From: Klebsormidium nitens
Taxonomy: Eukaryota > Plantae > Klebsormidiophyceae
DNA length: 41,931 bases
Assembly (NCBI GenBank): GCA_000708835.1
Contig: DF237655.1
Location: forward strand, 1 to 41,931
Reading direction: 5' to 3'
Made by a program: the position numbers and the translations under genes. Of the stretch, positions 4,330 to 39,700 are shown piece by piece. The notes beneath the pieces are model-generated. The model saw only the letters and a program-made list of their open reading frames with translations, was not told where the DNA came from and ran no database searches. The stretch's first letter is position 1. The number at the start of each line of letters is the position of its first letter.

Positions 4330-5720
4330 GCCAGATTAGGCCACATGCACAAGTCGCGTAGAGGTGCATTATAAATATAAGTCAGGGCGGCCACAATTAT
4401 AGTCCTAGTGGTCGAATGCTTCTCAGCCCCCATGGTATCTCAGGTGCGCCGGTTAGCATGCCATGCGCTCGAGTTCGGTCTAAAACCTGTGATTGAGAGG
4501 GACGGGCTCAGATCAAGCAGACTAACAATAAGGCATGAGGGTCTTGCATGATTTTGAGCGCGGCGCCGCTCCGCATTATAGCATCCCGGCCGGCGGCAGT
4601 TCGATCTACAGTATCTTGGGAACAATTCGGCCCCACCGGTCCGAGTCGAAGCTGGATTCAGGACTTATTCCGAGTTCTTGATCATGCCATTCAATGAGGT
4701 CATATGGATGCGCATTGTTCAAGATATAAGCTGTAGATCAGACTTGTACATACATATGTATACGTTAGCTATAGCCGGCGGCCCTAGCTAGCGCTTTGAA
4801 ACTATACAGTGGATCGAGTTTTAATATTCTAAAATTAATCAACCATCGTGCATGCACATCATGCCTATACTGCAGATCAATATATTCGCGAAGTAGTCGA
4901 TCATTGAATTGTTCATCATGCATGTGCATGTACGTACGTCATATGTTTCAATTTTCTTAGCTTTTAGAGTCAAGTTCCGGCCAATATATATACGTATATG
5001 CCATGAGTCGGAAGCCTAGAGCTAGCTATATATGGCTGCCAATTCAATGATCATGGCTAGCTGTATATACGGAGCGTGCCAGTGATCGAATAGACCATGA
5101 GTCCGACCACGATATCCTGTCCGGCCGGTCCCAGCAGCGTCGGACATCCGTCGCATCGATCAATGGCATAACATATTGTTATGATGCATTGCAAGACAGA
5201 CGGTTACCCGGTGAGCCAGCGTCATCAAGTATATACGGCGAGTCCCGCCGGGCCGAACCAGCTAATTTGCGTCTTATTGCCTTAGTTCAAACGAGGAGTA
5301 TGTTCGTGTACAAGTTTCATTGAGTAGCTAGCTGTGCCGCCCGGCACCGGCATCGCGGTCTGCACAGCATTGTGGGACCGCTAATCGAGTTCACGAAATA
5401 AGTGAACGTGGTCCCAGGTCCTTCAACAAAACGAAGCTGTTCAAGGCGAGTCTAGCTGTTGGGATCGGATGAGTTAAGGTAACCACTTGTGTCGAGTGTA
5501 AAATTACAGCTCAAATCTCCTCAATAATCCATCAGCACCGAAAAGTCCGATCGTGTCAAGACGACTCGAATCTCGAGCTAAGCAACGTTCCCATGCATCT
5601 GCAATGCTAGCAGCATGCCGCAACCTGCCGCTTCAATCTTCGGTTACTCGCTCTTGAGTAGACTCATAGCTAGAACGTTGAACGCTAGCGAGGTCGGCTA
5701 TACCGATCGAGGGGCTTTGG
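4330..5720. other. Palindrome / alternating purine-pyrimidine-rich intergenic island 1 (between convergent genes; boundaries approximate)
   Basis: ATACATATGTAT 4750-4761, GTGCATGCAC 4848-4857, ATATACGTATAT 4988-4999; perfect R/Y alternation at 4745-4765 (21 nt) and 4917-4939 (23 nt); dense CATG, GATC, AGCT, CTAG, TCGA, TATA. Confidence 0.7.
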
Positions 5721-5817
5721 TTTCCAATCTGAAACAACGAGGGTTGTAAACACGTGCGAGAAAGACAACGGTGAGTAGCTGGCATAGGCGGGTGGCTGTG
5801 GCGGTGGCGGTGGTGCG

Positions 5818-8800
5818 TCAGAGGATGATCTCCTCGCGCACCGTGCGTGAAAGCGACTTGTGCGGCAGCACGATGCAGTTGACCACCACCACCTCGTCCT
5901 CCACCACGTTGTCCTCGCCTGCACACCGCCACCGCCACCGTCAGCAGCGCCGCTGACGACCGGGAGGGAAGGAGGAGAGCATGAGGAATCATTCACGACA
6001 ACATACAATCAGTGGCCCTCTACGCTCGGACGCCTGTGTGGGCCAGGCCGCATCGCGCTTAAGGACACATGCCGAAGGGGCCCTTACCCAGGATGGTAAT
6101 CCCCAACTTGGCCTCGTAGTCGCCAGCGCCCTGCACGAGGCAGCCAAGAAGCGGCTCAGCGAAGAGCATACACGTCAGACATGCCGGGCCAACGAGCCTT
6201 CCCATGCCGCGGGACTGGCTGCAGTGACGGTTAGTAGTGGTGTGCGGCGGCTTACTTGGACGCGGGACCACCGGCCGATGGTGGACTTCCAGCCGACGAT
6301 GGAGTGCATCACACACGCGTTCTCCTGCAAGCACGCGGGCCAGTATGTCAGCTCCGAACTAGGCCGGAGATGAGGCGGAAACGGCACAGGCAGGCGTGTG
6401 CGCGGGGATGCACAGGCGGTGTCCCGGACTCGTGGCTGCGCCCGACGTGCTGCTGGAGACCATCGTCCTGGGGCCCGCTACGTTACCTCGCCTCTTTGTC
6501 TCGCTGCTTTTACCTCATGGGTGTCAATACGGATACTCGTCCTGTCCAAGAGGGGGCGAGATAGGGACTGATTGTCCGCGCAGTCAAGGGACATCATCTG
6601 GCGCAGGAGAATGTTTGCCTTTCAGTCAGCATTGCGGAAGGTCTGCCCAGGTGTCAGTCACTTCTGCTCAGACTAACAAAGGAGCGTGGCCCCGAGGAGC
6701 AGTTGGCAGGGTCGCTGTGCGCGCACCTTGATTTCGACGTCGTCCAGGATGATGCAGCTGATGAGGCGCACCCCCGCGCCGATGCGCGCGTTGGCCGCCA
6801 CCGCCACGTTGGGGCCCAGCTGCAGCACAGCAGCGCACGTCACACCGTGGCCACGTGCCAGGAACCCCAGCAGGGACTGGGTCACGCAGCGAAAGATTCC
6901 ACGAGGCTGCACGAGTGGTGCCCAATGTCTGCCGCGACGAGGCAGCTGTTCGCAAGGGCGCATCAACACGGCTGACAGCAGCGGGCGGGGTCTGACCTTG
7001 GCGGAGGGGTGGATCTTGGCCGAGGGGTGCACGTAGACGTCGCCGACGATGGCGGCCTTGCCCGGGCCGTCTCCTGAGGCCAGCAGGCCGGGGTTTGTGC
7101 GGCGGTACTGCGCCAGGTACAGCCCGGAGCACCGCAGCGCCATGCTGCACAAAGCACGCCACGCAGGTCAGCCACGCCGAGGCGGCTCCAGGAGAAATGG
7201 GAAATGGCAACCTCTCCAGCCCAGCTTGGCAGAGGCATGCCCAGGTGTGTCAGAGAGCGGTCGCGAATGGGCTGCCCGTGGTGGAGGCAGCTTCCTGTCC
7301 ATGCTCTGCGATACTGCAAGTTCCAGCGTCTCGTGCGGGTGGTTCCTCTGGCCTCTCACCCGGGCGTCTTGATCTGCTCCCAGAAGTCGAGCGTCTCGTA
7401 CACGTACAGCTGGCGCTTGCCCGCCAGCGGCGTCAGCACGTCTTGGTCCAGCCGGATGAACTCCGCTGCCGAGCCCCTGCACACACGCTCACACCCGCTC
7501 AGTCACCAACCACTGCAGAGACACGGCCCCCGACAGGCCTCCACCGGCCGAAGTGGCAAACACGCCAACTTCTAGCGACTCACAATCAAGTATACTGCAC
7601 AGCATGTTCCAAAGAACGGTGTTGCTTGCAGCATTTCCTAGGTCTGTGGAGCGGCTGCGTCACAACCAAGGTACTGTTGAGAAGGTGTACGCCGGCTAAC
7701 CTGGTGGTGCTGGCAGTGGCGAGGACCTCGAAGCTGGAAGCGCGCTTCAAGCTCGCTGCACGTGCCACGAAGCAGGGGGCGTCACACAGCCAGCCAGAAC
7801 GTCATATCCGGGACATGTCAGCAATACGCTATGAAGATATGGAGCAAAACAAATTCCCGAAGCAAACCAGACTTCACGCATTTCGGCTGCTCTTGATCTG
7901 CCAAATAAATGTAAGTATTCCATGGTCTGAAATCGTTACAGCTGGGCAGATCCCAGCTCAGCCTGTCCTGACGCGTCGCTGCGGGGCCTCACCGGTGTCC
8001 CTCTTGAAGGTGGAGACGGAGCTGATGTGGTCGAAGAGGCTGGACGAGAAGACGTACACGCCGCAGTTGATGAGGTCGCTCACAAACGTCTCGGGCTTCT
8101 CCGTGTAGTGCAGCAGCTCCTTGGTCTGCGGGTCCGCCACCAGCTCCCCAAACTCGGCCGCCTTCTCCTTGGACACCTTCTTCACCAGGATCGTGCCCAG
8201 GCCCCCGCGCGCGCGCTGCGCCTCTGCCCGCACGCACTGACCAGTCAGCACGCCGGCTCACACCATACCAAGTCAGATTATGACGTCAGGAAGCTTGGAC
8301 AGGCTTGGGTGCGCCTATCTTACAACGAGTGTTCCACATCAAGAAGGGCAGGGCGGGCATAGGCAGTCTCACGAAGGACTCGTTGGCAGTTAGAAAAGAG
8401 GCTGCGGGGCATCGTGCTTGGAGGGGCAGCCAGAGGTTGCGGGCCCACCTTGCAGCTCTGCGAGGGGGAAGCTGCAGCAGACATCGCAGTTGAGAACAAA
8501 CAGCATGTCCTGCACACAAAGACACCGGGCAGCATGTGAAGAGCGCAGCCAGTACGTGCTCGGCGGCCAGGAGAGGAAGCCCTCAACTCCCTGTCACTGC
8601 AACCAACAGGTTTGCATCCAGGTCCTCAGCGGATGGCACACTTTGAAGAAGAACGTGTCACTATCAGATCTGTTGAGTTGAATGCAAACAAAATGCATGT
8701 AAAGTCGGAGGCGAGGCTCTGAGATCTGGTGGTGGCACTAACTGGGTCATCTTCCATGATGATGTCCTTGAAGTGGCTGAGCCCCCCTGCGGAGCCGCGC

Positions 8801-9867
8801 GCCTTGTCCTCCTTCAAGTATCTGCGCATCACCCCACGCACAGTCAGCACAGCGCGGCGCAGGCAACAGCCCCCAGTGCCACACTGGCTCCAGGCAGTGG
8901 GCACACTGGCCCTTGCCTGTTTGTCCTGCTGGGCCTCAGGGAGTGGCGGCCAGCCCTGGCTGAGCCCTAGAGGCACAAAGTGCAAGAAGCGCGCCAAGCT
9001 GGTGGTTTGCAGGGCAGGGGGGCGGTGGCTCACCTGACGGGCACCTTGAGCTCAGTGGAGAGCGCAGACACGTAGAGCTGGAACTCCTTCTCCTCGTAGA
9101 AGCCCACCAGGTAGATGTGCACCAGGTCGGGGACCTGCAAGGCGGGACACACTCAGGGATGCTGCGGGACTGGGCCAGAGACGCTGAGAGCCGGAGTCAA
9201 GCTAGCAGTCTCCTCACCCAGCTTGGATAGAAGGATCACGTTTAAGCACAGAATCTATGAAGTGTCACATCAAGTCACAAATTGACCCTCGATGGGCAAC
9301 AACGTGAGGTCAATGCAGTAGTTGAATCTGCAAGACAAATGAAGCGATACTTCAAGATCTGCATTTGTTGGAGCTTCATCAGCACTCACCTTTTTACAGG
9401 CCTGGATGGGATGATGCACCATGGGTTGGCCAGCCAGTGGGAAGATGGGCTTGGCGACATTGAAGGAGAGGGGCCGGAAGCGGGTGCCTGCATTCCGCCG
9501 CAGGCAATCCCCATCATGGATCCACAAATCCCTCTTGCAAAATCCACACCTTGTCCATCAATCCATCAACCAACAGACAAACAAGGCTGAGGTGTTGCGC
9601 AAGTTTCTGAATTGCAACCCTCACAAAGAGTGCTCAATATAGCGCAAGTTGGCCAATCCCCAATGCCTATGCTGTACAGCCAGACAATCACAGCCACACA
9701 TTCTTACACTGTCACGGCAGTCATTCCTCCATCGAGCTGGCAGTTGAGAGTGCATTCTGCTGATCACCTGAAACTTTGCCAGCCCCGCATTGGCGGCAGC
9801 TGCTAAATTATTGACACTCACCTTTCGTTGGCCCCCCAACCATGATAATCGCCACAGAGCGCGTCAT
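5818..9867 (-). CDS. GMPPA: Mannose-1-phosphate guanylyltransferase alpha subunit (GMPPA / plant KONJAC-like), 13 exons, 413 aa
   Basis: Exons (minus) 9867-9822, 9487-9390, 9134-9034, 8821-8743, 8509-8449, 8223-7993, 7755-7701, 7476-7360, 7144-6997, 6819-6727, 6324-6256, 6130-6088, 5918-5818; 1242 nt. Motifs [51 protein letters not shown], left-handed beta-helix repeats, and terminal EEIIL. Confidence 0.96.
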
Positions 9868-10600: not shown

Positions 10601-11734
10601 ATGGCGTCCACTGCAGCCTGCCAGAGCCTGCTGCCTGCTCTGTCTGGCACGCAGCCGCGCTCCCCTGCTGTGGCCGCCCTCCGCCCTGATCCCTGCTGCC
10701 AGCTCCCGTGCAATGCTGCATCATGGCACAGCAACCGGGTGCGGCATAGGCTGCAGACGCAGGCACGGATTGCGACTGTGAGCTGCGCGCCGCCCGCCGC
10801 GGCAGCATTGTCCTCCTTGTCCTCGCTCAGTGCTCCGTCCCACCTAGCAGCCCTGAGCCACGGGCCCTGTTTATCCCCACGCAGCGGCACGCCCTCGGGG
10901 CGGCAGATAGAGGCGCGGCGGCGCGAGGAGGGCATTGAGCCGGCGCAGCGCGTGGTGGCGGGGCTGGCGTACCTGCTGCCGCTGCTGGACGGCATTCGCT
11001 ACGGGCGCTTCCTCTTCCAGCAGTACCCCTTCACGGAGGTCGTGCTGCAGCCCATCCTGCCGCTGGTGCAGCTGTACAACAGCGTGCCCTTCTCCTCCCT
11101 CGTCGCCTTCTTCGCGTGAGCCCACTCGTCACAACTGTCGCTTAAGCCCTCATGCAGGTGGTGCCAGTGATGCTTGCCCAACTTGCCCAACCTTCAGCTG
11201 GGGCCGCATCTTGAAGTATACCACCACTGGCGCCGTTGCTCAATTTCACTGAATCTTGCCTCACAGCCTAATCCTGTAGGTCTTTAGGCACCAGTCTGTA
11301 ACTGCACCATTTTGCGATGATCCTTGTCCCTTCGAAGACCTTCTATGAGAAGCATCGTGCCGCAATCTTTGACGGACCGGTGGCCAATTTTGGCGCCACC
11401 TGGTGCGCCCCCTGGGGTTGACTCGTGTGCTGCTGGGCGCGGGTCGTGCAGGCTGTACCTGCTGGTGGTGAACAACCCGCGGTACTCGCGCTACGTGCGC
11501 TTCAACTGCTACCAGGCCATCCTGCTGGACATCCTGCTCATCCTGCCTGGCCTCGTGGAGCGCAGCTTCAGCCCCTCCGGTGGCGCGGGCCTCGAGGCGC
11601 TCATCCTGTTCTACAACACCGTCTTCCTCTTCATCTTTTCGTGCTTTGCCTTCGGCTCCATCTCCTGCCTCCTTGGCAAGGAGCCCCGCCTGCCGGTTGT
11701 GGCAGATGCGGCGGATGCGCAAGTGCCATTCTAA
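10601..11734 (+). CDS. TIC20: Chloroplast inner-envelope translocon Tic20 / Ycf60 family (Tic20-II/V-like), 2 exons, 265 aa
   Basis: Exons 10601-11115 and 11452-11734. Ser/Ala/Arg-rich transit-peptide-like N-terminus, then AYLLPLLDGIRYGRFL, SRYVRFNCYQAILLDILL, PRLPVVADAAD. Confidence 0.93.
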
Positions 11735-12129
11735 GGGGGGATATATGATAACCGGGGAGATGCACACAGGTCCAACTTACAGTTGAGCAGTTGAAGCATC
11801 GAGAAAGACCACTCTTTTTATGTTTCACTCGGAAGGCACGGATCGCATTGTCACCCATAGACAACGCGGATTCAGTATTCTCATGCAAATGTGTGAAGCA
11901 CAGTTGACGCTCAACTGGGCTGTAGCACGGCTTTCACTCTCTGGCAAGGCCCTGCAATTGCGGTGTTGGAAAACATTGAAGATAAACGAGCATGAACCGC
12001 ATGAATTTGTGAAATTTGTATATATGATGGCTGGTCAGCTGCTAAAAGTTGACTCAGTGGGTCAAGTTCGACTCCGTCGGTTTGATCGGGCTTCGAGGCC
12101 GAGACGGTTTAAGCTTTCATTTCAGGCTG

Positions 12130-13330
12130 CATTCAACAATGACTGACCGGAACACCATGATTGCCGCAAATTTCCAACCAGCTCATCGAGCTCTGATGAC
12201 TCGATCACGCGTCGTCATGATCGCATGCATGTTCATTGATGGATATACGATATTGATATCATACGCGCTGAATGTTGCCGCCGCAGTGCCGGTCTATATG
12301 CCGGTCTATATGCAGGAAATCACTCACGTACCCTGACTGGTTCAATGCCGGCGCTTAATATATATTTGTACGTGCAGGAATTAGCTAGAGGATCTGCGAA
12401 TTCTATACAAATTGATCATGATGATCGCGATATTGCATGACCGTCTATATGTATATAAATATCATCTAGGAAATTGTTGCACAGGAGCTTCAAGCTTAAT
12501 TGATTATTAGACTTGTCCGACACTGAATATCAATTCGACCTAGCGCTAGCTTGCATGGTGAATTCTACGTTAATTTTGCAATAATATGCATCAATCGTTC
12601 AAATCACCACGTACATGTCGGCCCGAGGCCTACACGAAAAAGACTCAGCATATGCATGGTCGATCACATGTTAGATGCAAAAGGGATATATATAGATTAT
12701 GATTCAATGACCGCGCTAGTGCATATAGATTTAGATCATTTAACAGTGACGTCGGTCAGAGCCGTGGTCGGCTAAGTCGCGTCGACGACTGTATCTATTC
12801 AAGGCGTTCTGCACTAATCTTGCTCTTACTTCCTATAGCTAGCACCAGGCATCCGGCCCAATTACTGGTGACACAAACACGGTCTCCAGATCCTGGCGAT
12901 CGCCAGACGGGCGGTACTAAGTTGAGCCCCGGCAGGTGGTACTTGTCTTAGTACATACATGCAATCGAACCAATGGCAATCCTAATTTCAAACCTTCCGG
13001 GCTAACGAAAGGGGTGGCCCGCACCTCCTGGCGAATCTGTTTTTATCAATTGGCGGCTGTGACGGTCAAGTGAACGGTGGCAACTTGCAGCAATAATTGA
13101 CACATTCCATGTCAACATCATTGTTGCGAACTCACATGTATGCAGTGAAAGTCTTGTTTGCCAAGATCTTGTATGTACATCCACGATTAGTTGCTGCATG
13201 CGCAGGCTATCTTCGCTAGAGTACTCAAATCAGCAGGTCTATGTACCGGACTATGTACCTCTCGCTAGAGTCTACATGTATGCTCGGAAGTTCACCTGTG
13301 CAATGCCTCTGTCTTCGACGACTCATGTCG
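12130..13330. other. Palindrome / alternating R-Y-rich intergenic island 2 (between convergent genes; boundaries approximate)
   Basis: CATGCATG 12224-12231, TAGCTAGC 12836-12843, CTGGCGATCGCCAG 12893-12906, TATATGTATATA 12446-12457, and a 12-nt tandem duplication TGCCGGTCTATA x2 near 12288-12313. Confidence 0.7.
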
Positions 13331-13458: not shown

Positions 13459-16273
13459 TCAGAACTCTTCTACTTCATCTACCCCGTAGTCCTCGTACTC
13501 CTTCCACAGCCGTTCGATGCCGTCCACGTGAGCCTGCACAGCCACAACAACGAACTCAGTCGGCACACGCAGTACGCCCAGGATTGAGTCGAACGCCCGA
13601 TCGGCAGAGCGGCCACAAACGGCTGCAAAACAGGCCGGCACAGCATGTGCCACGTGCGTAATCTGCCCCCCTCCGTTCCTCAGGGCCGTTGCATCCTGCA
13701 ACCGGCACTCAAAGCGGTTGGTGACTGCCAAAGAAAGGGCTTTTCTTATCGCATAACAGCACGAGCCGATTGGCCGATGGCGAACCCAGGTAGTGAGGGC
13801 TGGCGCGCTGACCATGCCGACGACCGCCACGATGCAGCCCCGCAGCTGGCGGAGGCGGTTGAAGATGATCTCGTCGCGCTCGTGGACCATCACGCGCACC
13901 TGCACCCCAACGACAGCACGAGTGGGGCAGCCACGCAAGGCGAGCCTGCGACCGACTGACGTGCATCGGATGCGAGAGCACTAGCGTGGAATCGAAATGG
14001 ATTGTTGATATACGGAGGACAATGGCAGAAGATGAAGAGCATCAGTGTGTACCCGTCTACTGCAGAATGCTTCATTGGGGTTCTGCCTTCAATTCCCAAC
14101 CAGGCAAACGGCTCGAGCGTGTATGCGAGGTCTGAGGCAACAGCATCGAAAGCGTTTGAGTTGGCCACATATGACTTTTGGATCCACTGCTATTCAGCTA
14201 CTTCTTCGCTCCAACGAGGGAAAGAAGCGCTTTGACGAACAGCGCGGTACTCAGATGAGTCGGTGCAGTGGTGTGCTCACCACGTCCGGGAAGAGCTTCT
14301 CCATGAAGGCCGTGATCTGGCGCACCGCCTCGCGCGTCTTGAGCTGCTCCGTCGTCTCCTCGATGTTCTGCGGGGTGATCTGGCCCATGTCGCGCAGCAC
14401 GGGCGGGACCTCGTTGGGGTCGATGCGCCGCGTGAACAGTTTCACGATGTCCCACAGGCTCAGCACCTCCCGCAGGCGTGCCATCGTCTCCTGCACAGCC
14501 GCCACGCCAGCAGTCAGGGGGACATACGTTCATCTGGAAAGATTGGTCTACTATTGCAACATGCGAAGTAGTAAATGTTCAGTGTTGAATCACGATTGGC
14601 CAAAGAATGAGCGGCAGATATGACTTGGAGATACCGATCAGTCAGTTGCCCTGACGGTGCTTTGACGACCCACAATCAAATTGTGCCTTCATGACAACGC
14701 CTTTCAGAGCTCCTTCTGACCTGGGCGGGGCGGTCGAGCAGGACAATCTCCGCGTTCACCTTCTGGGCCTCCTCCATGGCCACCTGCAGCATGACGGAGC
14801 ACCCAAGTAAGTCAGCATCACCCTCGCCCACCTTATCCGATGAGCAGAACTTCACCTTCACCTACAGAGAAGGTTTTTGTTGGGCAGCAGAAGAGAGTTC
14901 CATGTGCGGCAAACACAACAGCGTATCTTTCTGAACTTGCGCATGCTGGGGAGTTCGAAGTCACCTTGAACTCGAGGCCTGGCTCCAGGCCGGTGTCACG
15001 CAGCATCTTGTACATACTGCGCATGGCTACCGTCAGCACCTGTACGCAAGACAGACATGCCCTCAGCCTAGAGTCGCCTCCCTCAAGGTGGACAAAAGCA
15101 AGTGGCTTTTTGAACAGCGACCGGGCTGGAGCCCTACCGTGATTGCAAGGATCCCCCATCCATAAAGGCTAAGTGTGACTGGGAGCAGTCTGTCATTGAA
15201 CAATCAAAGATGCAACGGCTCCTGGACAATGCACCTCGCCAGCGCGCAAGCGGCTCTTAAGAAAACAAGCTGGTTGACAGCGCTGGCGTGTGCCACCAAG
15301 CAGAGAACCACAGGACTGCTGGAGTTGCAGGCAGCAACCGTCTTCAGAAGTAGTTTGTGAAAAGTAACCAATGAGGCACCCAACCAATGCGCGCAGGCTC
15401 CTTTATCCAATCCCTCATGACTAGCACATCTATTTTTCCAGATGAACAGGAGTTGCTATTGAAATGCCCTCAGCGCATTGACTTATCGATGGAAAGGTGG
15501 TGTGAGCCCACTTGGGCGCCTCACTTTCTGGCCGATATCCCCTGGGGCGTGCATCAGCTCGCGCAGTGTGGCCAGCAGGCCGCGGCTGCCCTGGTCCTCG
15601 TACATCTTGCCCGACATCAGCTTCTCTGCGCGCTCCGCGTCTAGTTCGACGCCCACGTACTGCGGGCGCACCAAGTGAATCACCTGAGGCAAACCAGAAG
15701 GTGGATTAGCAAGGGCAGAAGGGGAAGGGTCCAGTCGAAAATTCAGGGCCTTTGGCGCTCGTAGTGCAAGTCCGTCCTTGCAGTGCTTGCTAGGCCACTG
15801 TCGGGGAAGCATTCATCAAAGTTCAGTCAGCCATTGTAACTTTGGTGGCCTGCATTGCCCCTGCCCTTGCCATGCACCCCCCTGTGAAACCTGACCTCTT
15901 TGACTTCCTCCGCTGAGGCCTTGGACACGTGGGCCGTGCCAATCAGGTACACCTCCGACCCCGTCCTGACGCTGCGCATGTACACGATGGTCTCGCGCTC
16001 CAGGAGGGGCGTCGTGGGCATGCTGTAGCGCCGCACCCAGGCGGCACCGCTTGCAGGGCCGACGGCCGCCTGCTGCCCGAGACCGAGCCGCTCAAGCAAG
16101 CTGGGCATGGGCAGAGCAGCTGCGGAGCCCCATGCACGAAGTGGCACCATGCCAGGTCCTTCGTGGATCCCAGCTGAGGCCTCGAGGGGCCCCACTAGGT
16201 GTGCCCTGCTCGAGGAGCGCCATGACTGGCGGCCGAGGGCCAGCCAGCCCGCAGGCCGCACAGCCCGCAGCAT
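13459..16273 (-). CDS. TraB/PrgY-domain protein (TRABD-like, probably organelle-targeted), 7 exons, 348 aa
   Basis: Exons (minus) 16273-15896, 15683-15525, 15039-14965, 14783-14721, 14490-14281, 13899-13813, 13533-13459; 1047 nt. TraB motifs VYLIGTAHVS, VGVELDAER, PGLEFKVAMEEA, VLLDRP, VHERDE, VAVVGMAHVDGI. Arg-rich N-terminal presequence. Confidence 0.92.
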
Positions 16274-16708: not shown

Positions 16709-16735
16709 GACCGTCAGATTCGAGATCTGACGGTC
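16709..16735. promoter_or_regulatory. Perfect 11-bp inverted repeat in the TraB/EPC1 divergent promoter
   Basis: GACCGTCAGAT-TCGAG-ATCTGACGGTC. Confidence 0.45.
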
Positions 16736-16993: not shown

Positions 16994-17012
16994 AAACCCT
17001 AAAATCCTAAAA
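16994..17012 (+). promoter_or_regulatory. Telo-box-like / interstitial telomere motif AAACCCTAAAATCCTAAAA
   Basis: Contains the plant telo-box core AAACCCTA, about 460 bp upstream of the EPC1 ATG. Confidence 0.5.
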
Positions 17013-20942: not shown

Positions 20943-21329
20943 GCGCCCTTTGTACAGCCAATTGTACACTATGTTGAATCTAAAACGACCGAAGACATTC
21001 GTGATATTGATCCCAGAGCCCACAGGCATAGTGCAGTCTAGCAATTTGTGCGGTCATACATTTACTTGCGAGCGCACTAGATTCCAATTATTTGGAGCCG
21101 TCTCTGCGGCAAGGGCCAAGCAACCGGGCGCTGGTACAAGTTGGCATTCCGACTGTCACTGCGTCCATATTTACTGAGTCCAGCGTCTCAACTGATGTTT
21201 GGACCCGTTTGTGATTCCTGACCGAAACTGTGTGTCAGACCGTCTGAGTAAGCTGGCCCGCGGCGCCACCATTCCCATTGGAGTGCACGCACCTGGCACG
21301 CCCGCTAATTCAGTGCCAGATCTGGCCTG

Positions 21330-25784: not shown

Positions 25785-26100
25785 CGCGCCCGCTCAGCTG
25801 AGTCGAAAGCCAAGGGGCAGGCCAATCACGGCTGCGCAAGGGGACACGCCCGTCGCATGCACACGCCGTAAAGGTGCTGAACGGAAGCGGCTTGCAAGCG
25901 GCCCGAGGAGCAGCTTTGAGGAAATGCGCAACCCAGTGCTAGATCCACATTTGCAAGCGGAGATACAAATTCATGATACCTGCACATGCTCTTGGGGTAG
26001 CGAATCTCTCAGTCTATGATGGTAACGGCTGCTCGGGTCCGAAACCTGCCGGTAATGGTATTTCAGTCGTCAGATTTGAGGAATCTGGTGGGAATCCTCC

Positions 26101-29300: not shown

Positions 29301-29481
29301 GGACGGCACGTTCCGTGGCGGAGTGTTGTATATTAAGAAAGAGGCGGGGAATCCGGTACGAGAAGGCCGGTCGGGGAAACGGAAGAGTATGGGGGACGAT
29401 TTTGAGGGAGACTCGAGGAAACGGGCGAGGAAAGGGCCGGGGGCCAAATCGAAAAAGAAAAAGTCGAAGAAGAGGAGGTGA
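26381..29481 (+). CDS. FAF1 / C1orf131 (DUF4602)-like small-subunit ribosome biogenesis protein, 7 exons, about 292 aa
   Basis: Exons 26381-26441, 26675-26727, 27004-27049, 27205-27356, 27895-28089, 28682-28768, 29197-29481; 879 nt; needs a GC-AG intron at 26728. Motifs LEKYGEEFMRMFD, RRNFLSPRV, LQQMGAKPAKSPRMPL, GLKASDGTFRGGVLYIK, and a Lys-rich tail. The first three exons are less certain. Confidence 0.75.
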
Positions 29482-29699: not shown

Positions 29700-30500
29700 G
29701 TCATGCAGAACGGTAGTTCCACGTGTGCCGCCTATAAGTTCTTTAGCCCTATCGGATCTTACAAACGGTAAACTAGTAAGACGGCCCCACATATGCGCGG
29801 GAATGGGTATGTGTGTGCTGTGTACATGGATCATATTGTGTGCTGATTGGCATGTACAGGCTGCGCATTTGGGGAAGCGGCATAAGGTAGTCATTGGCGG
29901 CTAGATCGGAACTACTTAAGCTGTTTGTGTGATTCGAGCGCGCGCCGCCACGCGCCCTGTCATGCACCGCACCGAGGTCGGCACTCCGCTATAGATGACG
30001 GTTTGCATCACGCTGCATGATGGGTATTGAGTCTATCCGATATCGCGTTATATACGTACACGTACGGGCTGACTCATCAGACGTAACATGAGAATTGAAC
30101 ATGACTGATCGATATGTTCATATGCAATATACAATTGATTGATCCATCAATTTATCAAACATGATTGATCAATCAATACATTGAACATGCCAGACAGTGA
30201 ATTCAAGTTCCCGGTCGGATCAGTGTGCATCGAGTTGGACCTAGTACATGAGAGAACTATAGTTTCGCGATATTCGAACAACATTTGTGATATTGGCCTC
30301 AAATACGATTCCGCCTCCAATGTTCAGTCCGGTCCAGCTTTGCTGGATCTGGCATGCAATCCATGGAAGCTATACAATGCCGCTCCGATCTATGTGGGAA
30401 TAATGATGCTCTGGCATCTGGACCTCTATATTAATTGAGCACATTGCAACGATCGACAGTCGCTAGGCTTACCAACAGGTTCGAGCTAGGTCAATCAACA
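29700..30500. other. Palindrome / alternating R-Y-rich intergenic island 4 (between convergent genes; boundaries approximate)
   Basis: TATATACGTACACGTACG 30049-30066 (18 nt alternating), TGATTGATCAATCA 30162-30175 (14-bp palindrome), GATCGAT 30107-30113. Confidence 0.7.
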
Positions 30501-30634: not shown

Positions 30635-32027
30635 CTAGCTCTCACTATCTAGGGACTCGCTCTCTATCATGATTGGTCGCCAAGAATTGATGTAAGAGTA
30701 TCGCGACAGAAGCACAAACCAGCGCCGGAACCAGACGTTCTGTGAGGCATGTTGCCTCATGCTGGCTGCACTTGCTGCAGCGGCCCCCTCGATGCAGCAG
30801 CCCCCGCCCATCCGGTGCAGCGTTTGGCATTCAAAGATCGAGAAGGCCACGTCCAGTGGGCCCAAAAACTTGCGCACGACGCCCATGCTCAACAACTCCC
30901 AGTAACGCACTGGCGTCGCGGCAGGAGCCTCCTGCGCCACTGCCCTGCACGAAAGAGTACGAACTTGTCCCTCAATCTGGTGGGAACACGGAACCAGATC
31001 ACTCAGTTCAGCCAGGATCGACTTTGGAACAATGGAACAATGGAATGTTTAAAAATGCCCCTTGAAATGTCTTGCCGCTTTACATCCTAGACGATTTCGA
31101 TCTTCAAACCTACAGGAGTACTCAACAACAACATTCGCTTTTGTCAAATCTAGACCTGCCACTTCTGTCAGCAGTTCGGAGGACAATATTTGACATGTTG
31201 TTCGTCTTCCACAGCCCACAGCCTTGCAAGGTGGTGAGGCCCACCTGACTGCTTCATGTACTGCCTTGTGGTTTGGGTGCCCTGAAACTCCATCCCCATC
31301 AAACGTGAGCACCATCTGAACGCCATGTTCCTGGATGGCTGTCCTGATGAGCTGGCGTGCGGTGGCCTGGTCCCAGCGCTGCTTCTTGCCGTCCTGCAGG
31401 CCTGGGTCGTCCACCACACTCACATCGGTGGGTTGCACTCCGAGCAGGGGGGCAGCTGCCAGGAGCTCTACCGCTCGCAAGGGCCCCAGGCCATCCGCGT
31501 TCCCTGCAGATGCACGTAGAAAGGAGTGCGGCAATCAGCAACAAAGAAGGGCGTTGACACTTCGTCACAGCTTGTTTGAAGGGCAATTGGAGGGCGTTCA
31601 AATTCGAGGACCACATTAGTCAAGAGGCCCCCTTCTTGAACAAGAACAACTGCCTGGAAAAGCATTAGAATGTACTTTCATTCTGCGCGTGCCAAGCGGT
31701 AAACAAAGAAAGCACCCTCCTGTTTATGACTTTCAACAGCTTCATGCTTTTGAGGAACACATCACAGATTGCAGATTGCTCACCATTGGAGAGGCACAGA
31801 ATGAATACCCGGCAGCAGTTTGCGCGCGCCACCGCTAGCAGCGAGGGGGCAAAGAACATGGCCTCATCGTCAGGGTGGGCCGTCACCAAAAGGATGGGGA
31901 CGGGCCCAGAAGCGCCAGCTGGCGCAATCTCCAGCGTACAGCTGCCCAGCATGCTGTAAACAAGGCATGCTGTGATCGCCACAGCTCCTACGAGGATGCT
32001 GCTGGCAAGAGCCAGTGGGCGGGCCAT
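30635..32027 (-). CDS. PIGL: N-acetylglucosaminyl-phosphatidylinositol de-N-acetylase (PIG-L/GPI12), 3 exons, 270 aa
   Basis: Exons (minus) 32027-31784, 31503-31245, 30944-30635; 813 nt. N-terminal hydrophobic anchor, LLVTAHPDDEAMFFAP, LCLSNGNADGLG, TFDGDGVSGHPNH, HASQNVWFRRWFVLLSRYSYIN. Confidence 0.95.
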
Positions 32028-32732
32028 TCTTGTGGCCCACGCTTGTGGCCATGCAGATTGATAACCAACGGTGAAACCAGGACGTGCTGTCAAGTTTGCT
32101 GTTGAGTTCTCAATCTACGAGCTGTATCAGTGTATGAACAGGGAAGCTAGACTCAGGTGAGGGGCATGAGCTCAGCGCTCCACTGAAGTCCACCCCATGG
32201 GGCCAGCAAATTGTCCAGGGCAAGCGCCAGCGCCTCGCTTGCAAGTTGCATACGGTACATGTGGGTAATTTGGCCACAGACCCCATGAACAGCGACCATC
32301 CGCACTTTGAGAGTGCCCGGTGCCGGGGATTACGCCGTTTCTACGCTCGCTTGCAATAGCTCTGTTTCCACGTAGCTGGAGCTGCCGATTTCAGATCCGT
32401 GATGTTGCATGCTGGTAACGGTCCACTTAATAGTGACGGTTCTGCTAAATATGAGCCCTTCGACTGTGTGGTCGCCTGCATTTTGGAGGATAATACGTAC
32501 CCCCGAAGTTGTGCCGGCATGGGATTTCCCAGATCTCACCCATATCGAGTGTGTGTGTGAGTGCCATGGCATGGGCCTTCAAGTTCAATTGTGCCAGTAC
32601 GTGGTGGATTACGGTACCTCAGCAGAGCGTGAGAAGCGGCGTTTCTGGTGGTGTGCCAGCGGCTGATCAGCATCAACTTCTAGCCAGCGTTTTTTCGCTG
32701 CCAATTCTGGCTGCCACCTCCATGCTGACACG

Positions 32733-35700
32733 ATGTTGAGGTCGCACCGGCTGCCCCCTTTGCAGGGCGTCTGGGAGGCGTCGGCAGCAGGACAGCCAGG
32801 GTTGTCGGGGTGGCTCTACCACCACTCCATCATTGCGTTTGCCCGGATACTTCACCACAATTTTCTGCCTGAGCGGCACAAAATTGGGTTCCCAGCATTG
32901 GAAGGTGGGAGATCCGATGGAAACATTGATCTGGAACAAGCGAGTTGCAGCCCGTCTGGCTCAACCACCACTTCAAGCTGCTGGGAGGTTGCGTCGGTAG
33001 CTTCATCATCGTATGAGACCCACCCCCTGAGAATCTCTGCAGCTGCGCCAGCTGTCTCTTTAGGCGCTGAGGATGCCTGTCAGGCTATTGTGGTACATCA
33101 AAAACCATCAATCAGAGGAACCCAAGTTTCCGGCCAGCGATTTCCCAACTCATCCAGTCCCATCTTGAATCCTCTATGGACACAGTTTCAGCGCTTCTAT
33201 GCCTTCCGGCCACGCACCAATCAGCGGCCGTATGCCCGAGAAGACGGCCCCCCGCGTCCCCCACCCTTGCGCCGCTCACAGCAGGTCCAGACTTCCAAAC
33301 TCGAGGTGCCCACTGAGAAGCAGTATGTCCCGAGCGTGCGAGATCTGAAGCGGGTTTTTGTGCCCAAGGAGATCGTCGTTCCCGATGGTGTGACGGTGCG
33401 CCAGCTGGCGGGCCTCCTGAGTGAGAAGCAGGACGTGATCCTGAGCACGCTGTCGGCGCTGGGGGACGGGGACTTGAAGCCGTTTGACAGCGTGCCGCTG
33501 GACTCAGCGGAGCTAGTGGCGCTGGAGCTGGGCAAGGTGATCAAGCGGGGGAAGCGCGCATGGGAGGACGCGCGGGGGAGCGCCAAGAAGGGGGCGGCCG
33601 CCAGCAGCTGGCCCAAGCGGCCGCCCATTATCACGGTCATGGGGCATGTGGACCACGGCAAGACGTCCCTGCTGGACGCCCTCAGGTGAGCTGAGCCGGG
33701 GTTGCGCTGAGCTCTTGGTGGGACTTGCCCCATGAGAATGAACGCTCTGAAGGCCCAATTCCTGCATCTTTGGAATGGTGAATGAGAGTTTGGGAAGATT
33801 ACGGCTGTTTGCGATTGTTGTCCAATTGGTTTGAAGGGCTCAACAAGTAGTGACGTGCTGAAGTCAGTTAAAATTTTCAGTGTTTGCTGTTGCAGTGTAT
33901 CAGGGCAGGTCATGTCATAGGCGCTCTCTTCGCTATCGATAATAGCTCGCTGCATCTCCGTGGGATAATTGTTGGCTGCGCTCCTTGATCTGCCACTTCC
34001 ACCAAATAGATTCTTTGAAGCCTCCATCTGAAGAATCACTCCAGAAGCTAGGGGGGATTCAAAGAGCTAAAGAGCGGGATGTACTGGAGGAACTTTGAAA
34101 ACAAAATCGCGAAAAGAGTAGACCATGAAGAAGCTGTCGTAAGAGAGTTTTTCTCCGCAATTGCCCCCTCTTAGGTCCACCTCAGTGGCTGCTGGCGAGG
34201 CTGGCGGCATCACGCAGCACCTGGGCGCCTTCGTAGTGCGCATGCCCGGCGGCGCTGAGCTCACGTTTTTGGACACTCCCGGCCATGCCGCTTTCTCCGC
34301 CATGCGCTCGCGCGGGGCCGCCGTAACCGACATCGTCATCCTGGTGGTGGCGGCCGATGACGGAGTGATGCCGCAGACGCGGGAAGCCTTGGCGCACGCA
34401 CGGGAGGCCAAAGTGGCGATTGTGGTGGCGATCAACAAGTGCGACAAGCCGGGCGCGGATCCGGCGAGGGTGCGCCGACAGCTGCTCGAGGAGGGGCTCG
34501 AGCTGGAGGAGGTGGGGGGGGATGTGCAGGTGAGCTGGCACTGTGAGACGCTCTGACAGGGCAGAGCAGAAAGAAATGGCTCCGTCCTGCCTTCTCTCCT
34601 AGGACCGCTTTCAAGACGGGCAAGTCTTTGAGCCGCCTTGCAATACTGAGCTGAAGAGAGCGACCCTATGTTCGCGAGATGGCAATCGCTCGCGAGTGAC
34701 CCTTTGGAAGGATATTCCCCTCGAGCTACGTTCACAAGATGACAGTTGATTGCGAGTAACCCTGTGGAAGGATGTTCACCTCGATGGATACCCATAAACC
34801 GTGGCAAAGGGTAGTCGCTTAGAAGCTCGGCTAGACCATGCCTTCAAAATACATGGAAGTTCACTTGTCTCTTTTCTGAAGCGACCCGTTCACTTACGAG
34901 GCGCTCTTTTCCATCTCCTAGGTGGTGGAGGTTTCTGCCACGGCCCGCCAGGGCCTGCAGTCCCTGGAGGAGGCGCTGCTGCTGCAGGCTGACCTCATGG
35001 ACCTGCGCGCTGACGTCACCCGCGAGGCGGAGGCCGTGGTTCTGGAGGCGCGCCAGGACAAGGGGCAGGGCCCGCTCGCGTCCGTGCTCGTCAAGTGCGG
35101 CCAGCTGGCACCGGGCACGCACCTCGTGGTCGGGCAGCTCTGGGGCAAGGTGCGCATGGCGGCTCACTCCTGTTCTCAATCTGCCCTTCTCCTTCGACTA
35201 CGGATCCCTTCAAGTACCTCATTAGAGTATATGGTGAAGATTGAAAGCCCATGCTCACCCCTCCTTGTGCGAGCGTTCCCACACTTTCCCCCAAGAACTT
35301 CCGCCCAGCTTCCACGCTAGCACGTTGACGACGTAGCCGAGGACATGCAAAGGAGGGATCAAACGGACGGCACACGTTACACAAAACTGGGACACGTAGG
35401 CAAGCCGAAATCAACTTTATGCAAAGCTTGTCGGGTCTGATGTAGGTGCGCGCGCTGCGGGATCCTAGCGGTCGGCTGGTGACGTCAGCAGGCCCCGCGC
35501 AGCCGGTGGAGGTGTTGGGGCTCAAGGGGCTGCCCGAGACCGGGGACGAGGTGCTGGCCGTCGCGACTGAGGAGCGCGCGCGCAGAATTGCAGAGGGCAG
35601 AGCCGCGCAGGCGGAGGCGCGGCGCCGTGAGAGTACTGTCATGGTGAGGGGCCGCGCTTCTCGCATCTTCGCAGAATCAAGAGATGTGTTTTGCCGATTT

Positions 35701-38406
35701 GACGTTGGTCCGGCGATCTGTAATCGCTTCGGATGGTAGAGTGTAGTGCAGCAGTTAGCGTGAGTCGACCAACGGTGGTACGCTGTATTCTTAAGAGGAA
35801 AATGAGTTTCTCATTCTGATGGCAAGCATTGACCAACTAGAACCATCTTTTAGATCTAGAACTCTGTGAATATCCAAACCGGTCACAGCCCTCAGCGGCG
35901 ATTCTTCTTCGACTCATTGTGAGGACTGAACTGCACGAAATCGGCAATACGAGGCTCGATGCTGAAATCATCAGTTCTGATATAAGCACACAAACTCCTA
36001 ACAAATGTCTTACACAGTCGACAGGGTGGGGATTGGGACGCCACTTGGCCGCATTCGGTTGCGCTTCTCCATGGCCCTCGATCCTTTTCTGAACCTCTAC
36101 GCGTCAGAAGCATGTAACACTGACCCCACCCCTTCCGACTCCGCAGGACATGCGCGAGAAGCTGTTGGAGCAGGCCCGGCTGCGCAGCGCGACCGCGGCC
36201 GCGGTGGGCCGTACGACGCGCGTCTTCTCCGAGGTCAACATGCCGACGCTGCAGTCGCTGCTCGACGCGGCCGCGGGCGAGGGCGCGGGCGCGGGCGCGG
36301 GCGAGCGGTGGGAGCTGGCGGTGGTGGTGAAGGCGGACATGCAGGGCACCGCGCAGGCCGTCACCGACGCGCTGCTCGCGCTCAGCGGACCGCAGATCGG
36401 CCTCTCCGTCGTGCACGCAGGTGAGCCGAGGAATCGGCAAGAAGAAGAGTGTAGAAGCCAGGACAAAAGTGTCACGGCCGCGACTAACATTGAAAGCGAC
36501 TGAAACCAACAGCCATAACCGAAGGCTTACCTGCTCGGGGGCCGCAGATCGGCCTCGTGCACGCCAGTGAGCATCGATCTCGAGACAGCTACCAATTAGT
36601 AAGGTAAGAATAGGTTTCAGATGTACTAGGATGGGTATGGTTACCGGGTGGGTGTGGACGCGAAGCAGGTTAGTTGAGGCTTTTTGTCTTGCTTTGTGAA
36701 GTTACTTCTGTTTATCTTGGGATTTGAACGGTGGAGCCCCCGCAGAGCTGCCCGCCGTGCTTAGGATTTTCTGCAGGAGATGCTGGGGCTGAGTTGGGGT
36801 TGTAAGACACGCGGCCAGCTATTTATGCTCTTCCAGCAGTTTGTTCTTGCCTTCAACAACTGACAGGAAGGGGAATCACTCAGCAATTGGTGCAGAACGG
36901 CCTGTTACGAGCTCTTCAATGATGTGGAACTCTCATTCAAAGCGGTCGACAAACCTTGGTGTTACCTAAGAATCGCTCGCCTGTGTAGCGCTCCCCTTAA
37001 ATTGAACCCTGGCTCGTAAAGCCCTTACCACTCTGCGCTCCTCTTTTATCCGCGTACGACAAAGCCACGACCACTCAGCGCGCATTGAATTGTCGTTGTG
37101 GCCTCTATGATCTTGTCACGGCAATCGCATCATTTACACTCTGTGGTTCCTAATCGGTTCCGCCCCGAGCCACGCCTGACCATTATTTGCCATTTTTCCC
37201 TGCGTAATCTCGTGTTGCATCGAAGAATATTGAGACCTTGTCACGGTAAGCTTCACTTTCTAGAGCTTATGGTTCGTCGTCTGATACCGAGCTACTGACT
37301 GACGAGCGTGTGCCGTTTTCCCCTCAGGCGTGGGCCCCGTGTCGCTTTCCGACGTGGAAACTGCGGCCGCGTGCCTCAAGAGCCGCCGCTGCACGCGCGC
37401 AGCCGTGGTGGGGTTTAACGTGAAGGCGGGTGCGCCCGTGGAGGCGCTCGCGGCCGCGAAGGGCGTGCCGCTGCATCAGCACCGCGTCATCTACCACCTG
37501 CTAGAAGATGTTGGCACCGCCATGGTCAACCTCGCGCCGGGGACCAAGGAGAGCCGCGCCGCGGGGCAGGTGCGCGGCGCACGTTTTTCAAGTGCAAAGC
37601 CGTCGTTGCTACTGTTTGTCGTTCGCTGCAATACGAGTATTGAACATCTGTTCTGCTTAAAATGAGAGTCAAAGTGTCTGTCGGTAGCACGCACGGACGG
37701 TCAGCTTTCGTGGCGGTTCTTTGTTGACAGGAGCAAAATCACCACCGTGGTCAGAAACGAGCGTTTTGGCAGCCAAGCACTGCTTCGAGTGGAAGTATTT
37801 CTCAAAGGAACACTCTGATATGATTGGTTGAGGGATTGAGTTGTCTTGTTGGTCTCTTTCCGCTCGCGTCATCTTGATAAGCAACCCTCACTCAAGAGTC
37901 ACCTTAGAAAACACAAACCCTTCTGCACAAAAGTTCCGCCCTCTTTTGTTGTGTTCGATCGCTGCACTTGACAACGATGCATCTTCGTCCACTCATGCCT
38001 GTGCGTCGTGCTTGCATTGCACCAGTAATAACGTTCATTGGCTCAGAAACTCACGCCCCGTCTCCGTTCGTCGCGCCAGGCTGAGGTCCTCCAGATCTTC
38101 GGCGTAAAGAAGAAGGGCGTCCCCGAGAAGACGGCCATCGCGGGCTGCCGCGTGACGGACGGCAGCCTGCGGCGCGGCGCGTCGGTGCGCATTCTGCGCA
38201 GCGGGCGGTGCGTGTACGAGGGGCGGCTCGACTCACTAAAGCGCGAAAAGAATGACGTGGAGCGCGTGGATAAGGGCAAGGAGTGCGGCCTGACGCTCGA
38301 CTTCCGGGACTGGGTTGTGGGCGACACCGTCGAGTGCCTCGAAGATGTCATGCGTCGCCCCAAGCTGGTATCCGACAAGAGCGGCAAGCTCACGCTGCAG
38401 GCCTAG
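32733..38406 (+). CDS. infB: Translation initiation factor IF-2, bacterial-type organellar (probably mitochondrial); 5' structure uncertain
   Basis: Exons 32733(?)-33685, 34175-34529, 34922-35149, 35446-35643, 36147-36420, 37328-37569, 38080-38406. G1 [56 protein letters not shown]...G, KGKECGL. The true start may be ATG 32566 (MAWAFK...) with extra short 5' exons (branch-like GCTGAC at 32724, acceptor at 32765). Confidence 0.9.
36531..36572 (+). repeat. Degenerate intronic copy of the 3' end of IF2 exon 5 and its splice donor
   Basis: CCGCAGATCGGCCTC-GTGCACGCCAGTGAGC versus exon end CCGCAGATCGGCCTCTCCGTCGTGCACGCAG|GTGAGC at about 36387-36426. Confidence 0.7.
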
Positions 38407-38689
38407 CGTGCGGCGCGCTCGCGGACGGCTTGCATTGAAACACATTTATGTATGTGGATCATCTTTCAGATAGACTCGCGGAAACGGCATAGCTCCTTGA
38501 GACGGTTTGTACTTGATGCATTGAGCACAGTGCCAAGCTGATTAGCCATTGAGGATTAAGTGAGCCGCGCTTGAAGCGATACGTATACTGCAAGCTGCCA
38601 GGCTTGTTGGTTTTGAAACGGGCCTAAGTTCTTTGGACGACAACTGCGTAATTTTGACAAGCCGTGCCACAATCATGCCGAATATCGTC

Positions 38690-39700
38690 CAGGCTGAGTC
38701 CTTTCCGTCCGACATGGGAGTTTGAACTGAGGTCGCACTAGCTTCGCCCGGCCTATAGCCTGCTAGCTTATAGTAACATTGGGCCGCGGGCGCTCGCACA
38801 GTCGATCCCGTTCGGCATTACGTGCATAAGCTGGTGTTACTTTTGTGTACGTGTAGTCCTCAATCTGAGAACTTACAAGAACTGAGCCACCTTATCACCA
38901 TGCAAGTTTGATCTTTCAACATCAAGTGTGACGAAATAGAATGACGTACACTGCTGCAAACTTAAGAACCCCATTCGGCGCGCGCGGTGCCGCGGCCGGC
39001 TTCAATAGTTGCGTCGACGTGCCGTCGATGGATATTGCTAAACCCTGAACGGAACGTCCTAGTGCCGTCACGAGGAGTTGCATGCCAGCAGAAGTTGACT
39101 AGGACACGCAGTGATCGGCAATTATAGGCCCGTTATAGGCTTGTGACTGATATGCATGGCGGAAGACTTGTCCATCCTCTTTTCCTGAAGTACGAATTGG
39201 GAAGCAAGGCGCTTGCCTTCTCTTCTTCTCCGCATGGCTTCCTGCCATGCCTCAGCTCATCTCATGCTGCATCGTTATGGTGGTGAATGTAAGTAATGAA
39301 AGGTTGAGCACAATGGAATGAATTGCAGACTTTCCGCTGTGCCGGTGAATACGGGTGAAGGTCACTTCCGGCGCCGGTAGCGGAAGTGTATGTCTTTCCG
39401 TAGCGGCAGTGGGAGATGATTTCGACGGTCACACAAGCAGCAGCGGCTGCACCCGGCGCGGCGTACCACGTACGTTAATACATCTTAGAGTGCATAATGT
39501 TGATGGCATATCGTATGACTGCGTCAGGGAGGGCCGCGCACGCTGCTGGCTGAGCGGGCGCTGGAGCGCTCGCTTTTAATGAAACCGAACGTACGCAGTG
39601 GCACGAGACCCCGGAGCCCAAGAATTATGTTCGAAATTAAGCTTCATTTAGGTGCAGGTGGTCGGATACGGGTTATATATATACCAGCTCAATCATGATT
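38690..39700. other. Palindrome / alternating R-Y-rich intergenic island 5 (weaker; between convergent genes; boundaries approximate)
   Basis: TGTGTACGTGTA 38844-38855, GGCGCGCGCGGTGCCGCGGCCGGC near 38977-39000, CGTACCACGTACGT near 39463, TATATATATA 39674-39683. Confidence 0.55.

Follow-up and report, generated by a model that had tools for sequence, protein, structure and literature searches.

Palindrome-rich islands at the convergent gene junctions of a Klebsormidium nitens scaffold

What kind of DNA separates two genes that run toward each other? The question is raised by scaffold DF237655.1 of the alga Klebsormidium nitens (assembly GCA_000708835.1), which was analyzed complete, as a stretch of 41,931 bp referred to here as the window. 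Its ten genes alternate strictly between the plus and the minus strand (964-41931), giving five convergent junctions, four divergent junctions and no tandem junction; if orientation were random, such an order would arise by chance about once in 500 (2^-9). A preliminary description of the scaffold had proposed that all five convergent spacers switch to a special texture of short palindromes and alternating purine-pyrimidine runs, and that the introns and the four divergent regions lack it. Both halves of that proposal are borne out by our analysis, as one palindrome-rich island lies at each of the five convergent junctions (Table 1) and none in the four divergent regions.

Palindromic 4-mers number 100-153 per kb in the islands against 50-79 elsewhere in the window. 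In 300-bp sliding windows, their observed/expected ratio (O/E) under mononucleotide composition rises to 2.0-3.1 in islands 1-4, where that of palindromic 6-mers reaches 3-4.4, the median for 4-mers over the window being 0.98. The fifth island is present yet weak, as it is split into a double peak with an O/E of 1.6-2.1. The cores are 0.45-0.9 kb in size and low in GC (0.38-0.52). In dinucleotide-preserving (Altschul-Erickson) shuffles, 300 per island, none matched the observed palindromic 4-mer count in any island (ratio 1.41-1.83, z 3.0-8.3), and the result was the same for the refined cores and for the intervals first proposed. The enrichment therefore survives against sequences of matched dinucleotide content. 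The corresponding shuffle ratios are near chance for introns (0.96), exons (1.08), the divergent regions (0.90-1.28) and a long low-CpG region at 16500-20000 (1.00).

An unbiased scan using a local first-order Markov expectation (z >= 2.5) returned the five islands together with two minor segments, 701-1050 and 35351-35650. Both minor segments have a local z of 2.7-2.8; the former overlaps the start of gene A near the telomere-type repeats described below and the latter lies within the eIF5B gene, in a part that is rich in GC. The first proposed intervals overshot on the side of the minus-strand gene, where 5250-5720 and 12900-13330 are without enrichment. The islands do not resemble one another: blastn (word size 7, E <= 0.01) gave no similarity among them or to the rest of the window, direct or inverted, which agrees with the original impression of a compositional feature rather than a repeat family and speaks against a repeat, a miniature inverted-repeat transposable element or a degenerate transposon family as their source.

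The primary signal in the islands is palindromy. All 16 palindromic 4-mers are enriched, 1.35- to 3.1-fold, including AGCT, GATC, CTAG, TCGA, CCGG, GGCC and AATT, which do not alternate between purine (R) and pyrimidine (Y). The median O/E is 1.6-1.7 under a first-order and 1.5 under a second-order model, and the pooled islands hold 519 palindromic 4-mers against about 319 expected under Markov orders 1 and 2 alike. Because non-palindromic R/Y-alternating 4-mers are not enriched after dinucleotide correction (0.93-0.99), alternation is secondary and is ruled out as the sole source of the texture. The long alternating runs containing A-T that had been noticed are real all the same: runs of at least 12 occur at 2.8 per kb in the islands against 0.21 elsewhere (random expectation 0.24), an enrichment of about 12-fold, the longest being 23 bp, and 0.566 of all steps alternate, compared with 0.487 elsewhere. 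These runs are rich in A-T pairs, whereas Z-DNA-prone tracts are mainly CG or CA/TG. Also confirmed were the richness in TpA (O/E 1.02 in the islands against 0.54 elsewhere) and ApT (1.40 against 0.91), CpG standing at 1.10 against 0.82, and the strand symmetry, with a purine excess per 100 bp of 0.059 in the islands, below the random value of 0.080, and of 0.121 in the rest of the window. Within the islands, O/E ranges over 1.4-1.95 for ApT and 1.1-1.5 for CpG, and homodinucleotide steps are fewer.

The unit of the signal is the tetranucleotide. Complementarity between positions is found only at lags 1 and 3, and a strand-symmetric order-3 Markov model pooled over the islands (order-3 models of single islands overfit such short sequences) reproduces the counts of 6- to 14-bp palindromes (ratio 1.0-1.24, not significant). 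Perfect palindromes of at least 10 bp are denser in the islands, as had been noted, with 18 in total, a density of about 3.9 per kb where the rest of the window has 1.3 per kb, and three or four of 10-14 bp in each island, but they follow from the 4-mer content and do not form a separate feature. Since the signal stops at what 4-mers produce, a function as cruciforms or hairpins is unlikely. An early suggestion of cruciform-prone DNA where converging polymerases meet is disfavored on this ground and also because such polymerases generate positive supercoiling under the twin-domain model, which opposes cruciform extrusion, an argument also made for yeast (PMC2908449).

Among the palindromic hexamers, 46 of the 64 exceed expectation and the leaders are chains of AT, TA, GC and CG units (TATATA, ATGCAT, GCTAGC, CGGCCG, GCATGC), which rules out a single binding motif; hexamers with homodinucleotide steps, such as TTTAAA, GGATCC and CCCGGG, were not found in the islands. 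A single DNA-binding factor is likewise unlikely, given an enrichment that extends to every self-complementary 4-mer. Short duplications also mark the islands. Period-4 tandem duplications number 37 against about 16 expected under orders 1 and 2 (reached in 0-1 of 200 simulations, p < 0.01), and those with a self-complementary unit 11 against 1.3. The period-4 runs are 8-10 bp long, and about half of the stretches are (CATG), (AGCT), (CCGG) or (GTAC). Introns have no excess of period-4 duplications, the islands have none of period-3 duplications, and a period-2 excess was seen only for self-complementary units.

Several ordinary sources of such a texture were rejected. Patchy AT/GC composition does not apply, as the mixed words CATG, GATC, AGCT and CTAG are in excess and AAAA and CCCC fall below expectation. 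Microsatellite arrays are excluded by Tandem Repeats Finder, which lists just three two-copy repeats in the islands, with units of 12, 19 and 26 bp. The 26-bp unit (30136-30189, 2.1 copies) holds a 14-bp palindrome, and the 12-bp unit lies at 12287-12313 (2.2 copies). No Rfam family matched anywhere in the window at its gathering score, so a known RNA family is not the cause. Repeat-induced point mutation is expected to give a TpA/ApT index above about 0.89 and a (CpA+TpG)/(ApC+GpT) index below about 1.03; the values found, 0.73 and 1.36, rule it out. An assembly artefact is ruled out because a Logan assembly, made independently, and a contig from a JGI metagenome have the same texture.

How the islands relate to transcription could be followed at island 2, the junction covered by contigs of four runs, probably of RNA, that belong to four different studies. 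These contigs carry one spliced GT..AG intron (in TIC20, gene C; 11115-11452) and five CT..AC introns (in genes B and D, that of gene B at 9486-9821), and their splice orientation confirms the strands of genes B, C and D. Contigs of TIC20 stop at 11829-12072 and those of gene D start at 13113-13297, so that part of 12900-13330 is the 3' untranslated region (UTR) of the minus-strand gene. Between them, 12073..13112 has no RNA contig in any of the four runs, contigs showing presence and not absence, and contig depth is zero in all bins of 12200-12999. The core of island 2 (12000-12900) fills this gap. Each island is a poly(A)-to-poly(A) spacer, the shared termination zone of two converging genes, with the RNA evidence coming from island 2 only. 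In the divergent region of genes B and C, the stretch without RNA is only 10158-10385 (about 230 bp), which suggests bidirectional promoters, and it has no palindrome texture. It had been suggested that the islands might be the only untranscribed DNA, exposing a distinct mutational equilibrium; the core of island 2 does match the RNA-free gap, but because the untranscribed promoter gap lacks the texture, lack of transcription alone is insufficient.

The islands also differ from their surroundings in CpG, with an O/E of about 1.1 against 0.3-0.8 in many gene bodies. The depletion varies from gene to gene: parts of some gene bodies (1050-2250, 8400-9900, 17400-19200, 26000-27000 and 31000-32000) have an O/E of 0.3-0.6 and others are near 1. 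K. nitens has gene-body CG methylation (PMC5890265), and the CpG pattern, including its variation between genes, fits that report.

Two relatives with the same gene order, a Logan assembly contig (L002) and a JGI metagenome contig (L003), allow the islands to be viewed over evolutionary time. Their exons are about 76-93% identical to those of K. nitens at the nucleotide level, and both carry an island directly downstream of TIC20 (L002 1950-2850, L003 9300-9900); the L003 contig begins within the counterpart of island 1. Between K. nitens and L002 the UTRs and some introns align, whereas the 1.1-1.2 kb spacer between the UTRs does not, and the core of island 2 lies in this unalignable gap, whose length is similar in the two (1244 versus 1095 bp). 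Local alignment detected no residual homology of the island with L002 or L003, the scores being no better than shuffled (z -0.6 and 1.0). The island does not stand alone in evolving fast, since several introns and the promoter regions fail to align just as completely. What persists is the word content. The 4-mer O/E profiles of two independent sets of K. nitens islands correlate at r 0.68 and those of K. nitens and its relatives at 0.38-0.53; comparing the islands of K. nitens or L002 with introns or the rest of the non-island DNA gives about 0, and comparing the small set of L003 islands with non-island DNA gives r 0.30-0.36. The non-island DNA of the three genomes correlates at r 0.82-0.86. 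The islands therefore carry a conserved genomic signature of their own: between species, the sequence is replaced and the composition kept.

Another palindrome-rich stretch (O/E 1.8, TpA O/E 1.2-1.6) was seen at L003 13500-14015, just outside the gene D orthologue on its 5' side, where the contig ends; its K. nitens counterpart is a divergent promoter without palindrome texture. No island was found at the one Closterium locus inspected, which contains a single convergent junction as well as tandem ones. Because that convergent junction lacks one, streptophyte algae do not require the islands in general.

The nearest known parallel comes from yeast. Inverted repeats and palindromes of Saccharomyces cerevisiae cluster in intergenic DNA, least at divergent 5' flanks and most at convergent 3' flanks, with a genome-wide excess of 12.7% for arms of at least 7 bp and spacers of up to 76 bp, apparently without cruciform extrusion and without known function (Strawbridge et al. 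2010, PMC2908449). The Klebsormidium islands resemble this clustering in their excess over randomized sequence and in their distribution (five of five convergent junctions, none of four divergent), the window having no tandem junction for the full ranking. They differ in strength and in kind: the excess is 1.4-1.8-fold over dinucleotide shuffles (2- to 3-fold over base composition), it concerns 4-6 bp words with no spacer, it is confined to sharply bounded islands with a 4-mer signature conserved across species, and extra long-arm repeats are absent (order-3 ratio 1.0-1.24; no inverted blastn self-match). Sites of cohesin and termination between convergent yeast genes and the strand-switch regions of trypanosomatids also lie between converging units, with a presumed role in termination or as boundaries; their defining marks are bound proteins or a modified base, and not a palindromic texture as in the islands. 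In their CpG content next to depleted gene bodies, the islands recall unmethylated CpG-rich islands beside methylated gene bodies, from which they differ in their low GC and their position at 3' ends, and CpG covers only part of a palindrome excess that survives dinucleotide-preserving shuffles. One survey describes short palindromes as generally under-represented in all kinds of genomes (PMC3077040), and on that account a strong local excess is unusual. Our literature search found no description of palindrome-rich convergent spacers for Klebsormidium or other algae.

Given the above, we tentatively favor the view that the texture is a side effect of a local regime of mutation and repair, by break-and-repair or slippage, that is found in termination-zone spacers only, and not a set of protein sites or a structure-forming element. 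Lying outside the transcription units, the spacers would be spared both the CpG decay of gene-body CG methylation and the strand-asymmetric pressures that act on introns and UTRs. They may turn over through small insertions and duplications at dyad-symmetric breaks on a 4-bp scale, or through hairpin-assisted slippage, and such events would seed short runs of (CATG)n, (AGCT)n, (CCGG)n, (GTAC)n and (AT)n that later decay by point mutation. The most concrete candidate for the source of breaks, unproven as it is, would be topoisomerase II (Top2), acting where converging polymerases accumulate positive supercoils; the traits that recommend it are its 4-bp stagger, its reported preference for alternating purine-pyrimidine sequence and the 4-bp de novo duplications it leaves. 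Top2-dependent de novo duplications are mostly 4 bp, the distance between the nicks (Stantial et al. 2020, bioRxiv 10.1101/2020.05.03.075358), and a preference of Top2 for alternating purine-pyrimidine repeats was reported by Spitzner et al. 1990 (cited in PMC1920260). The islands are like this pattern in their alternating runs, their 4-bp scale and, against orders 1 and 2, their excess of 4-bp tandem duplications; they are unlike it in that a palindrome excess is not a known Top2 signature. Taken together, the RNA-free gap at island 2, the generic palindromy and its 4-bp scale, the period-4 duplications, the turnover with a kept signature and the CpG content suggest a local mutation and repair regime.

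A number of points weigh against this proposal. A 4-bp duplication makes no palindrome, so the origin of the palindromy remains inferred, and Top2 scars would account for the tandem component only if the cleaved 4-mers were already symmetric. The period-4 excess is itself marginal under the pooled order-3 model (37 against 24, reached in 12 of 200 simulations). The excess amounts to about one extra palindromic 4-mer per 20 bp, for which a purely mutational origin needs a high rate of scars confined to the spacers. Because introns that turn over and the untranscribed promoter gap lack the signature, freedom from constraint alone is insufficient. The RNA support is limited to one island and is contig-based, and hence is no proof of absence. 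The similar size of the islands at all five junctions and the similar spacer length in the relatives fit selection equally well.

Selection is indeed the nearest competitor. A boundary or terminator element defined by composition, in which some physical property of the spacer can be used from both directions, is nearly as likely in our estimate as the mutation and repair regime, with a neutral equilibrium next in line. Candidate properties are the engagement of Top2 or SMC complexes, a defined nucleosome array or a slowing of polymerase, any of which could keep converging units apart in a compact genome. Such an element would account for islands at every convergent junction and at no divergent one, for the similar core sizes, for a signature common to non-homologous islands (r 0.68) and for strand symmetry beyond random, as expected for a two-way function; the persistence of texture and spacer length at the orthologous junction of two relatives despite full sequence replacement, and the density of yeast inverted repeats at convergent 3' flanks (PMC2908449), point the same way. 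However, no one motif is prominent, compositional conservation would follow just as well from a persistent local mutation bias, and the single Closterium convergent junction examined has no island. A speculative extension is that the islands form a hitherto undescribed class of element that partitions the genome in the Klebsormidium lineage: a terminator or insulator whose dense, strand-symmetric array of self-complementary 4-mers is kept by selection while its sequence is free, so that converging polymerases, Top2 or SMC complexes are handled in a fixed zone at every tail-to-tail gene pair. We regard this as possible though less likely than not.

It is somewhat unlikely that the islands are simply the neutral equilibrium of DNA that is neither transcribed nor methylated, where, without any special source of breaks, ordinary slippage favors self-complementary seeds through hairpin folding and the outcome is erased elsewhere by the pressures of transcription and methylation. 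The match of the RNA-free gap to island 2, the undepleted CpG and TpA, the short self-complementary runs of period 2 and 4 and the unconserved island sequence agree with such an equilibrium, but the texture is missing from the promoter gap at 10158-10385 and from the divergent regions at large, no real microsatellite arrays were reported by Tandem Repeats Finder in the islands, an O/E well above 1 is enrichment beyond a mere lack of depletion, and the survey cited above has short palindromes under-represented in all kinds of genomes (PMC3077040). Clusters of target sites for symmetric DNA methylation, either N6-methyladenine (6mA) at ApT or 5-methylcytosine at CpG/CHG, could mark gene ends: both strands offer identical sites, CpG O/E is 1.1-1.5 and the ApT O/E of 1.4-1.95 agrees with the dense ApT of AMT1-type 6mA clusters. 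We consider this improbable. The enrichment spans all 16 palindromic 4-mers and not only those with AT or CG, and the high CpG O/E suggests that the islands are not CG-methylated. Known eukaryotic 6mA at ApT sits toward the 5' side of transcribed genes, past the transcription start. Its association with transcription has been described (PMC7145601), whereas the islands lie past 3' ends and, at island 2, without RNA contigs. A search for literature on 6mA in Klebsormidium found no paper. Slightly more remote still is a degenerate transposon, or the scars left where cut-and-paste transposons repeatedly entered and left a safe landing zone. Short palindromes are the usual footprint of excision, the resolution of hairpin ends and remnants of terminal inverted repeats leave short palindromes with no spacer, and the islands do contain several small tandem duplications (12, 19 and 26 bp); on the other side, they have neither mutual similarity nor long inverted repeats, direct repeats at lags 8-11, the size of target-site duplications, are barely above 1, and no transposase open reading frames (ORFs) or terminal inverted repeats were seen.

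The gene layout on which these comparisons rest (Table 1) was drawn from NCBI gene calls, RNA splice joints and Pfam hits, which uphold the convergent arrangement first described. The NCBI calls were taken from L001, which is the window shifted by 600, and the orientation of genes F-J came from Pfam matches on ORFs. A codon-usage log-odds model trained on Pfam-positive ORFs agrees with the orientations. Counts of the GTRAGT donor motif per strand were uninformative for orientation and filtering of ORFs by GC3 was ambiguous between strands, the codon-usage model, NCBI calls and RNA joints being used instead. Exon 1 of TIC20 is 100% identical to the K. nitens protein KFL_007060030.

Table 1. Palindrome islands and genes of the window. 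For islands, the evidence column gives palindromic 4-mers observed versus the number in dinucleotide-preserving shuffles, z, and shuffles matching the observed count.
Feature	Position	Strand	Evidence	Remarks
Island 1 core, genes A(+)/B(-)	4500..5250		115 vs 66.6, z 6.4, 0/300	shoulders 4200-5400; 153 per kb; O/E up to 3.1
Island 2 core, TIC20(+)/TraB-family gene(-)	12000..12900		135 vs 73.9, z 8.3, 0/300	
Island 3 core, EPL1 gene(+)/zuotin(-)	21300..21900		82 vs 53.1, z 4.7, 0/300	O/E up to 2.8 (4-mers), 4.4 (6-mers)
Island 4 core, FSAF1-like(+)/PIG-L(-)	29700..30450		89 vs 61.0, z 4.2, 0/300	14-bp palindrome 30162-30175
Island 5a, downstream of eIF5B(+)	38700..39150		49 vs 31.4, z 3.9, 0/300	weak
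Island 5b, downstream of dirigent-like gene(-)	39450..39900		49 vs 33.7, z 3.0, 0/300	weak
Gene A, 486 aa, no Pfam match	964..4099	+	NCBI call, codon-usage scores	3' end toward island 1
Gene B, GDP-mannose pyrophosphorylase-like	5818..9867	-	NCBI call (NTP_transferase, GMPPB_C), Pfam	3' end toward island 1
Gene C, TIC20 (KFL_007060030)	10601..11734	+	NCBI call, protein match	3' end toward island 2
Gene D, TraB family	13459..16108	-	NCBI call, four CT..AC introns	3' end toward island 2
Gene E, EPL1 domain	17474..20942	+	NCBI call	3' end toward island 3
Gene F, zuotin-like (DnaJ, ZHD, Myb)	22396..25793 (approximate exon span)	-	Pfam, N-terminal domains at higher coordinates	3' end toward island 3
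Gene G, FSAF1-like	27225..29472 (approximate)	+	Pfam FSAF1, codon scores	3' end toward island 4
Gene H, PIG-L de-N-acetylase	31052..32114 (approximate)	-	two PIG-L profile halves in minus-strand order	3' end toward island 4
Gene I, eIF5B/IF-2-like GTPase	32667..38403 (approximate)	+	GTP_EFTU, IF-2, EFTU_D2 in plus-strand order	3' end toward island 5
Gene J, dirigent-like (weak)	40154..41931	-	C-terminal end of Dirigent profile, E 2e-5, below curated cut-off; codon scores	3' end toward island 5

Two further features of the scaffold concern telomere-type sequence. At positions 1-179, an 8-bp unit is repeated 22 times. It is a permuted version of CCCTAAAA, which is the complement of TTTTAGGG, the telomere repeat of Chlamydomonas type, and the scaffold start appears to be a chromosome end; gene A starts about 800 bp inward of these repeats. 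In the divergent region of genes D and E, a telobox-like AAACCCTA repeat (16994-17012, 2.4 copies) is adjoined by a 14-bp palindrome at 17010-17023.

What the islands mean for Klebsormidium depends on which process maintains them. If their texture is a mutational scar, the islands would be a natural genome-wide record of a break-and-repair process in a close algal relative of land plants, and one could test directly how convergent transcription, DNA torsion and local mutagenesis are linked. If it is selected, they would represent an element, regulatory or architectural, that is encoded in k-mer composition and not in sequence, of a kind that alignment-based conservation scans miss by design. 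In practical terms, the islands mark poly(A)-to-poly(A) spacers sharply and may thus aid in placing gene ends and terminators in Klebsormidium annotation and in transgene design.

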